From: Chara braunii
Taxonomy: Eukaryota; Plantae; Charophyceae
Length of the DNA stretch: 64,000 nucleotides
NCBI GenBank assembly: GCA_003427395.1
Contig: BFEA01000016.1
Coordinates: 3,604,479-3,668,478 of the forward strand
Reading direction: 5' to 3'
Part shown: in pieces, positions 48,801 through 51,800 of the stretch
How positions within the stretch are numbered: position 1 is the first letter of the stretch
How the letters are laid out: every line of letters begins with the position of its first letter
Notes under the pieces: model-generated
Database searches by the model: none
What the model saw: only the letters and a program-made list of their open reading frames with translations
Told to the model about the DNA's origin: nothing
Position numbers and translations under genes: made by a program

Positions 48801-51800
48801 CACACCTAAGTCCGTGGGTATTTTGCACCCAACATTCACCCTTTTTTTTTTTTTTTTCGTTCCCCAACCTGCGTCAGTGAGAAGTTTCAGCGTCCTCAGG
48901 ATGGTCGTTTGTGCTGTCGTGGGTTCCACGCTGCAGGGACCTGACTGGTAGAGTTGTCTATGGCGTGCACCAATGATGCACCAACCTGCTCGTGCTCTCG
49001 TTCCCCTTTTGTCTGTTCCTCAGTTTTCCTGTTATGCTGCTGCTGCTCTCTGAATGGTCATCGCCTCTTGCATGCGCTTCTCTTTGACCCTGCGGCTGGC
49101 TCAGTATGCAAATTGGCAAATGCCGCAGCTTTTTGGTTTGACGGAACTTGCTAATTTGGTTTCGGGGCTGGAGGGAGTTGTTGTCGTAGAAAGCACGAGT
49201 CGCCTGCCTGATGTGAACGTCAAACATGTCATTATTGTGTGGATGGTGTTCTATTGCGGCAGGTGAAATTCACCGAGGAGCGCTCATCTTTTCTTCATTT
49301 TCTCACAAATGTATGCGCCATTGTTGGAGGTAAGCCGCATTTCCTGCCAAGCACCACAACTTTCAAAGGCCCTCCCACGGCCAGTCGCGGTCTTTTTCTG
49401 CTTGGTGTGATGCACGCTTGTTCATTGACTCTGCATGCATCGCTGTCCTTTGCGGATTGCTAAAAATGTGTAAGACCTTTCAGACACGGACCTCAGTGTG
49501 TATTTTCGTGGGCAGCAGCCATGTTGATGTAAAGCCAACTGGTGTTAATGGTGCTATAAAAAAAATTAAAAAAAGAGTGCTCTCGCAGCTCAGGTTCAGG
49601 CATGTTGCACCCCCTGCAGTTTGACAAAGTGCTGGTGTGGAAAAATGCTCAGAAAGCCGTGTGGAAAACGATGTCGAGCAACCTTTGGCGGGGACGGACC
49701 GCAAATCCGTGTTCCAGCGTGCACAGAGAGCACCGAAGGTGTGGGTGGTGGGAGGGGCAGCAAGGCCTTTCTGAGAGGGTCACTACCAGTCATTGTGTGA
49801 AACAATTTCAGACGCTGTCAAGCCTCGTTCGTTGTAGGTATGCTGGCCTGACATCTGCTCTTCAGTGCACGAATTGCCAGCATGGTTTTCTGTTTCCCAA
49901 GACGAGAAGAAAAGGAGATGTGAAAAATTATTTAAAACAATGGAAATGTAAAATCGGTCTTGTACGCATTGCATGCACTGAAAGTATGGGTGGGTGGAAG
50001 GGAGGGGAAGCTGAGCCCTCTTTCTGGACTAGCAGTAGCAGTCTTTGTGTGGAAAAATGTTGGGGGCATTCTTTGGCCAAGATTGGATCTACAGTACTAT
50101 AGAAGCTCCTGAGCGACATAAGGAACAGCCTGGATTGCAGGCCGATCACTGCTGGGGACGGCACATATCTCAGGCCGATGAGAGGCTTTTCTCATTGGCC
50201 TGAGATCTGGGCCGTTCGTGGTGGTGACAGACCTACAATCTAGGCCATTCGGTGGAAAAGGTACTGGTAGGTATCGGATGTGCTGGATGGCCTCAAATGG
50301 CCTGCCCAGGTGAAGCAACGCCTCAGGAGCCCTCCTTTTTTTTTGTTTCTTTTGATTTCTTTGAAGTTTTTTTTTTTTTTTTTTTTTTGTGGACGGCAGG
50401 TATATCAGTCCGCCACTTGAAAGTAGTGGGCTTCTCAGTGCGCCACTCAACAGGCAACTCAACGAGCCTATGACACTCGACACGCCTACTCCCCCCTACT
50501 CTAGCGGTCTCTCAATGAGCCTACACTGACACCACACGGAGAACACAGGGACACACACACTCATGCATAAATGCAAACACAATGACACACACAGCCACAC
50601 AAGCGCGCACGCACGCACGCACATGCATCCTGGGCAGACTGTCGGGGCTCAACCTCCTGATGAGTCGGTGAAAGTCCGGCGAAACAGTCTGGCACAGTCA
50701 TGGTTTTCTTTGTGTGTGTGTTGGGGGGGCGAGCGACCATGGACAGGTTGACTGGTGAAGATGAAGATATGGAGCACCATTAACGACAAGGTAAGAAAGG
50801 GGAATATTATGTTGCTGTCAGTTGGATTGTAGTTTTGTTGCTCTCTCCTTATCGACTCTGATGGGAAAAGGCAGAAAGCATGGTAGCATTGGGAAGAAAT
50901 GGGGAGAGGAAGAGGGGAGCAGCGATGTGAGATAGTCCTAGATGACCAGGGCGAAAGAAGAGGGAAAGGTAGTTGGACAGGACAGTAGGACGGGAAATAT
51001 TTCGGATCGGAATGCAATGGGGATGGCGTGGAGTATGTGGGGGAGTTAGGATCAGGGAAGACGGGTGTAGCAGTTGTTGGGGATCTGAGATCGGGAGGCA
51101 TACGGCCGTCTTGGGGGAAGGTAGGATCAGGGCAAAGGATTGACAGAAGGGAGTGGGTAAAGAAGAGGGTGAGGAGGCACTCACGAATGGATTGGTGGGG
51201 GGAGAAGGAAGAGGGGCACATGAGAATTGGTGACAGCAGAAGCCAGTAGGACGAGGGGAGGAAAGGATTTGAAGAGGCGCAGTGTGATAACACGGGTGGG
51301 GTTGGAGGGAGAGGAGAAGGGGGCACATGGCACAGCGTCATTGGAGGGAAGGGAGAGTCGAGGTACAGTCGCGAAGGGGAAGAGCGGGAGGCAGCAGAAG
51401 CCAGTAGGACGAGGGGAGGAAAGGATTTGAAGAGGTGGATTATCACTTACAGTGTAATCAGTTAGGGGATTCTGCAGACTGTTGAGGGTTCAGCCTCCTG
51501 ATGAGTCGGTGAAACTCCGACGAAACAGTTTGCCACAGTCCCTCGTTTGTTGTCGTCTTCTCCCTCTCTGCCTACGGTTTACTGGGCATCTCTGTTTGAC
51601 TATATATATGTATATATATAGATAGATAGATAGAGAGATAGAGAGATAGAGAGAGAGAGGGAGAGAGAGGTATGTTATTATCAATGTCTGCTGAAGCCCG
51701 TGCTTGCTGTAACCTGCCACTAACACCACCACCACCATAACCCCCCAACCCCCTGACCCGAACCCTTGAAATCTTCCCCCGCCCCCCCCAAAAAAAGACA

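Follow-up and report, generated by a model that had tools for sequence, protein, structure and literature searches.

Chlamys elements, a type of Penelope-like retroelement, occur at very high copy number in the charophyte alga Chara braunii (Craig et al., 2021; PMC8557442). As described in that study, one C. braunii Chlamys type carries a canonical hammerhead ribozyme at its 3' end with a zinc-knuckle open reading frame (ORF) upstream of it, and Chlamys insertions are frequently truncated at the 5' end, form partial tandems that give rise to pseudo-long terminal repeats (pseudo-LTRs), possess a 30-40-bp tail and are biased toward insertion at (CA)n and (C)n. Non-autonomous derivatives in Chlamydomonas retain the 3' end of the element according to the same study. 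Putative retrozyme-like tandem hammerheads have been described in algae and Selaginella (De la Pena and Cervera, 2017), and for the non-LTR retrozymes of animals an origin from Penelope-like pseudo-LTRs and a dependence on Penelope-like enzymes have been proposed (Cervera and de la Pena, 2020, PMC7229834; Li et al., 2026, preprint, 10.64898/2026.07.22.740005). Here we analysed a 64,000-nt stretch of C. braunii contig BFEA01000016.1 (hereafter the window), in which two hammerheads, termed B and C, lie in the same orientation in the last intron of an ERGIC3-like gene, and a decayed relative, termed A, lies further upstream. On balance, and with modest confidence, we favor the reading that B and C are two separate, independently inserted non-LTR copies, each 5'-truncated or non-autonomous, from two subfamilies of hammerhead-bearing, microsatellite-associated Penelope-like (Chlamys-type) retroelements of C. 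braunii.

Of the described elements, Chlamys-2_cBra (PMC8557442) would resemble the locus in several respects: it resides in the same genome, has a hammerhead near the element end with a short tail behind it, is associated with repeats of the (CA)n/(C)n type, and shows very high copy number, frequent truncation and partial tandems. The locus differs in having neither a reverse transcriptase/endonuclease nor a zinc-knuckle ORF, for which the 3.2-kb intron is too small. MRC1 of Chlamydomonas is a further short non-coding element that keeps the 3' end of autonomous Chlamys and occurs in head-to-tail copies; unlike at our locus, no hammerhead is reported for it (PMC8557442). Plant LTR retrozymes (Cervera, Urbina and de la Pena, 2016; PMC4918200) share with the locus direct type III hammerheads, a non-coding interior and a predicted unit of 600-1000 nt, whereas the LTRs of about 350 bp, the tRNA-Met primer-binding site, the 4-bp duplication and the compact fold that characterize them are lacking here, and no polypurine tract is evident beside a 3' repeat. 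Metazoan non-LTR retrozymes are likewise non-coding and delimited by hammerheads, but in the descriptions cited (PMC7229834; Li et al., 2026) they are type I and form true tandem arrays of 170-400-nt units, while the locus has type III motifs, amounts to 1.08 'units' of 840 nt and has a unique interior.

Both motifs were identified with the Rfam Hammerhead_3 covariance model (RF00008), which in a scan of 2.2 kb aligned B and C end to end with type III topology. Their scores lie slightly under the Rfam gathering score of 48.5 bits, and a default scan is therefore silent on them; scaled to the whole window, their E values are about 8e-7. In B, an 8-bp helix III (CAGACUGU/ACAGUCUG) leads into the cleavage triplet GUC, with a predicted cut after C50643, followed by helix I (GGGG/CCUC), the core CUGAUGA, helix II (GUCGG/CCGGC) and GAAA. 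The layout of C is the same, with the triplet GUU, a predicted cut after U51483, helix I GAGG/CCUC, helix II GUCGG/CCGAC and a 9-bp helix III that includes one G-U pair. In both motifs helix III is open, helix I comprises 4 bp closed by a 5-6-nt loop, and helix II comprises 5 bp closed by a 7-nt UGAAAxU loop. All 13 core positions and all 17 standard pairs are kept in each, and the window contains two instances of the exact core pattern, where 0.02 would be expected. For C, the hammerhead is also the predicted fold of lowest energy (-23.6 kcal/mol, z -3.2), and its helices account for 84% of the ensemble. For B, the hammerhead fold at -20.3 kcal/mol faces a rival fold at -22.7 kcal/mol, giving it P of about 0.01 in a calculation that excludes tertiary contacts. 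Cutting at both predicted sites would release nucleotides 50644-51483, an RNA of 840 nt. Directly after helix III, a 7-nt CACAGTC is kept at 50693-50699 and 51534-51540 (CTCAGTC in A, 37916-37922); it repeats the ACAGTC of the 3' strand of helix III and could compete for the 5' strand.

The initial annotation had described two same-strand hammerheads with a full core and three stems, predicted cuts after 50643 and 51483, a spacing of 840 nt with a purine-rich non-coding interior, and differences between the two copies that preserve pairing. Our analysis bears out each of these points, with the qualification that every pairing-preserving change is a one-sided wobble change. It also agrees that similarity between B and C is largely confined to the ribozyme, since the repeat common to both measures 67 nt at 88% identity (50634-50699 versus 51474-51540); the flanks gave no alignment upstream and CACAGTC alone downstream. 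Within the repeat, seven substitutions and one loop indel separate the copies, all of them sparing the core bases and leaving every pair intact. The substitutions include three wobble-mediated changes in stems and one that lengthens helix III. Among the copies, stem differences are one-sided throughout, with no double compensatory change, and a covariation count on the three sequences A, B and C accordingly found no two-sided change and lends the fold no support. In a simulation, only 0.45% of random seven-substitution sets left the motif compatible. Because the substitutions spare the core and the pairing to a degree so rarely reached by chance, we conclude that B and C diverged under selection for the ribozyme fold. 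Most simply, this selection acted in the replicating source elements before insertion. Copy A, with two broken helix II pairs (G10.1-C11.1 and 10.4-11.4), illustrates what neutral decay looks like.

The flanking sequences group B with A and not with C. A and B share 125 nt at 82% identity, a stretch that takes in an upstream leader (consensus ATGCATCSTGG) and the beginning of the tail; over its first 25-30 nt, the B tail aligns with that of A with a score attained by 17 of 1000 shuffles. Upstream of A stand (CA)14 and the leader, and downstream come tracts of CA-rich sequence, (GT)n and (GA)n, then a gap in the assembly. The CA-rich tract before B aligns with the (CA)n before A at a score of 37, equaled in 0 of 300 shuffles, a comparison confounded by low complexity. 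A and B both sit immediately downstream of (CA)n. Beyond its tail, B runs into (TG)5T(G)7 and C into (TA)n(GATA)n(GA)n. Read on the opposite strand, the (TG)n and (G)n after B become (CA)n and (C)n, the targets reported for Chlamys (PMC8557442). Judged by the flanks of these three copies, A and B would form one subfamily and C another. The coordinates of the copies, their flanks and the host exons are collected in Table 1.

Table 1. Hammerhead copies, their flanking sequences and the nearest host exons, in window coordinates.
Feature	Position	Strand	Basis	Remark
Decayed fourth family copy (probable)	25643-25694	-	own covariance model R1, 20.6 bits	A/B-like leader TGTATCAATGGG
Copy A, decayed hammerhead	37857-37915	+	Rfam, 33.9 bits	
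Penultimate host exon	49239-49331	+	PF07970 positions 195-218	coding part ends ...CAIVGG, then GT donor
CA-rich imperfect microsatellite	50523-50622	+	sequence	directly 5' of B; target site or the element's own CA-rich leader
Leader of B, 11 nt (ATGCATCCTGG)	50623-50633	+	alignments	counterpart in A is ATGCATCGTGG; absent from C
Hammerhead B, type III, core intact	50634-50692	+	Rfam RF00008, 45.7 bits, E 2.8e-8	
B tail (CACAGTCATGG and a T-rich run), followed by (TG)5T(G)7	50693-50729	+	alignment to A tail	
Purine-rich non-coding interior	50730-51473	+	composition	G 41%, A 28.5%, internal direct repeats
Hammerhead C, type III, core intact	51474-51533	+	Rfam RF00008, 45.8 bits, E 2.7e-8	
C tail, 67 nt	51534-51600	+		CACAGTC alone common to A/B tails; no significant alignment
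(TA)n(GATA)n(GA)n compound microsatellite	51601-51669	+	Tandem Repeats Finder	adjoins C tail
Last host exon, 30 codons and stop	52559-52651	+	translation	too short for Pfam

The probable fourth copy was detected with a covariance model of our own (R1) run with filters off. Its match has a rough E of 0.002, and helix I is preserved in it. Several other candidates were tried and rejected. Alignment scores at 46565-46615 (+) and about 22000 (-) fell within the block-shuffled null, and a tail match at 641-702 (GTCCCTCGT ... ACTGGGC) was dropped because it went unranked in a window-wide scan. A hammerhead-like stretch at 11883-11930 (+), with a CATCCCGG leader, GGGTTCAAACTCC and TTGAGTC, lies on the 5' side of a Penelope-like remnant; were it real, it would tie the hammerhead family to that remnant, but its score also lay within the shuffled null. 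Beyond this window, ribozyme pattern scans of metagenome and viral contigs returned eight loci whose likeness is limited to the 29 nt of core and helix II; the flanks are unrelated in all eight. Two of these loci, on phage-like marine contigs (L002, 8190-8244, minus strand; L006, 3440-3494, plus strand), are type III hammerheads of 53.6 bits that match C without a difference over the 29 nt of core, helix II and loop 2. A longer family-specific pattern had no matches in a genome-contig collection that includes no algal genomes.

The 744 nt between the B tail and C have a marked composition. The 840-nt RNA would be 69% purine, compared with about 51% in the flanking intron, and a GC skew of +0.4 to +0.69 is limited to about 50700-51450. 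The interior contains direct repeats, among them 51229-51277 and 51387-51435 (49 nt, 96% identity), and no second copy of it was found in the 64-kb window. A 265-aa minus-strand ORF over the interior and an ORF across B, searched as pseudo-proteins, yielded no homologues. Purine-rich or GA-type sequence also follows each of the three hammerheads within 60-250 nt (37966-38096, 50730-51435 and 51601-51669); the (GT)n and (GA)n tracts after A run into the assembly gap of Ns at 38097-38520. Other purine-rich blocks (about 75-84% purine, 600-800 nt) occur at 700-1330 (+) and 54900-55700 (-), have internal repeats of roughly 60 nt and adjoin (GA)n/(CT)n. With R1 and filters off, no hammerhead was found beside either. 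Weak leader look-alikes preceding these blocks on the purine strand were discarded, as they stood out neither in a window-wide comparison nor against block-shuffled windows, which score equally (null maxima 29-37).

The initial annotation had read the pair as a retrozyme-like unit, with two independent insertions as its fallback, and in our view the fallback fits better: the flanks group B with A, and the microsatellite contexts differ, with (CA)n and (TG)n(G)n around B versus (TA)n(GATA)n(GA)n after C. The A/B subfamily would then be recognized by (CA)n upstream, the common leader and the shared tail, the C subfamily by its different flanks and downstream compound microsatellite, and the 67-nt hammerhead module would be all that the two have in common. 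Both would most likely have been copied by a Chlamys-type Penelope-like reverse transcriptase/endonuclease through target-primed reverse transcription. By analogy with hypotheses on Penelope-like elements, the ribozyme may trim the element's read-through or tandem transcripts so that their ends are defined. Here, both motifs would be transcribed within the intron of the host pre-mRNA, and cutting at both would yield an RNA of 840 nt that begins with a 5'-OH and ends in a 2',3'-cyclic phosphate, a by-product of neighboring insertions as opposed to the unit of the family. By our own arithmetic, given 3-4 copies per 64 kb, a same-strand pair within 1 kb should arise by chance in roughly 5-9% of windows, and common microsatellite targeting would raise this figure.

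Several points weigh against two separate insertions of this kind. Published Penelope-like hammerheads are mostly type I. In the Penelope-like remnant of the window (11.1-17.1 kb), neither a hammerhead nor similarity to the B/C locus was detected, and ten of its ORFs gave no Pfam domain. The tie to an autonomous parent element and the mobilizing enzyme are inferred, and the subfamily assignment draws on three copies. Selection by the host in place could likewise account for the clean B/C differences. Finally, the domain skewed toward G and purines is almost coextensive with the interval between the two ribozymes, and so resembles one bounded unit. If the interior is the body of the B or of the C element, a coincidence is needed at one boundary only.

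The skewed domain bracketed by the two ribozymes speaks for a single composite insertion of the retrozyme-like or pseudo-LTR type, possible in our estimation if unlikely, in which B, the interior and C were laid down together as about 1.08 units by rolling-circle or tandem template copying, and the 840-nt RNA, cut at both ends and ligated into a circle, was the transposition intermediate. The two intact ribozymes lie on the same strand at a spacing inside the 600-1000-nt range of plant retrozyme circles (PMC5680766), and Penelope-like/Chlamys insertions typically form partial tandems with a repeated 3' part (PMC8557442). Against these stands the shortness of the repeat, together with B flanks that match A and not C. 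Moreover, if B and C had started out as identical copies, seven later neutral changes would, as the simulation indicates, be almost certain to have damaged one of them. The hallmarks of an LTR retrozyme were sought at the locus with little success, in keeping with the initial annotation, which had noted no evident LTR, primer-binding site or polypurine tract. No LTR was present, the direct repeat measuring 67 nt, as opposed to about 300-400 bp in plant LTR retrozymes, and the best match to the tRNA-Met primer-binding site (TGGTATCAGAGC) was 9 of 12 positions and not where expected. As for a polypurine tract, purines prevail throughout the interior; the closest uninterrupted run of them (51411-51425) is found 49 nt upstream of C, with 38 nt of mixed composition between the two. 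No convincing target-site duplication was found, a 7-nt CTGGGCA on either side of the pair being at chance level. The 840-nt RNA folds no better than its shuffles (-200.6 versus -197.4 +/- 6.9 kcal/mol, z -0.47), and with no excess structure it does not resemble the compact rods that retrozymes and viroids form. The interior is unrepeated in the window, which with type III topology and only two motifs also departs from a metazoan-type tandem array, and purine-rich blocks matched to it in size and texture occur elsewhere in the window without hammerheads. Of the retrozyme reading, the ribozymes and their spacing stand, and the single 840-nt unit is not favored in light of the short repeat, the A/B flanks, the selection pattern and the fold. 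That B, the interior and C make up a true non-LTR retrozyme of 840 nt in this streptophyte alga, freed from the intron transcript by cuts of its type III hammerheads at either end and then circularized, seems to us improbable.

It is also distinctly doubtful that B and C are inactive relics, real copies of the family of which neither cuts in vivo and from which nothing is released. Both score under the Rfam threshold, helix I has just 4 bp, C has the less favored GUU site, and the hammerhead fold of B makes up about 1% of its ensemble; on the other hand, both retain every one of the 13 core positions and every stem pair, and C reaches the hammerhead as its minimum-energy fold with a z of -3.2. 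That one or both of B and C are host-exapted ribozymes, which cut the last ERGIC3-like intron and thereby tune splicing or 3' processing in the way proposed for conserved intronic hammerheads in amniotes, appears very improbable, for although both are intact and sense to the gene and their differences look selected, they are members of a dispersed repeat family of which decayed copies lie close by, misfolding is predicted for B, and vertebrate non-LTR retrozymes are reported to be depleted from introns (Li et al., 10.64898/2026.07.22.740005), so that genic copies are likelier to be tolerated than used.

The host gene encodes an endoplasmic reticulum vesicle transporter of the ERGIC3/Erv46 family (Pfam PF07970) on the plus strand. 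Its exons were scanned individually and not joined: exon-sized plus-strand ORFs at 41.1, 48.7 and 49.26 kb match PF07970 at successive profile positions, with 49239 marking an ORF start and not a mapped acceptor. Because exons flank B and C on the plus strand, the pair is sense-oriented in the last intron (about 49332-52558, 3.2 kb), as the initial annotation had placed it. A near-perfect 60-nt hairpin at 50157-50216 in the same intron gives sub-threshold matches on both strands to several miRNA models (36.9 bits; gathering score 95) and is probably a small palindromic repeat. Elsewhere in the window are two full-length U6 snRNA genes or copies at 8758-8857 (-) and 40476-40584 (-), with 91 and 90 bits, and an internally deleted, A-rich U6 retrocopy at 39254-39336 (-), with 50 bits.

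By itself, the B/C locus reveals no new kind of element. The initial annotation had suggested a distinct non-LTR retrozyme family, and in this it overlaps with the hammerhead-bearing Chlamys elements of C. braunii described in PMC8557442. If the 840-nt RNA were after all a retrozyme, it would represent a living intermediate between Penelope-like elements on one side and the LTR retrozymes and viroid-like RNAs of flowering plants on the other. If instead B and C are two copies of a Chlamys-type family, as we favor, they would add a further case of type III hammerheads, the plant and viroid style, on non-LTR, microsatellite-associated retroelements of a charophyte alga. Such a family would bear on the proposed Penelope-like descent of plant retrozymes, and perhaps of viroid-like RNAs. 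Two apparently intact sense ribozymes in the intron of a housekeeping gene may, in addition, amount to a convenient natural test of whether copies of this kind cut the pre-mRNA of their host.

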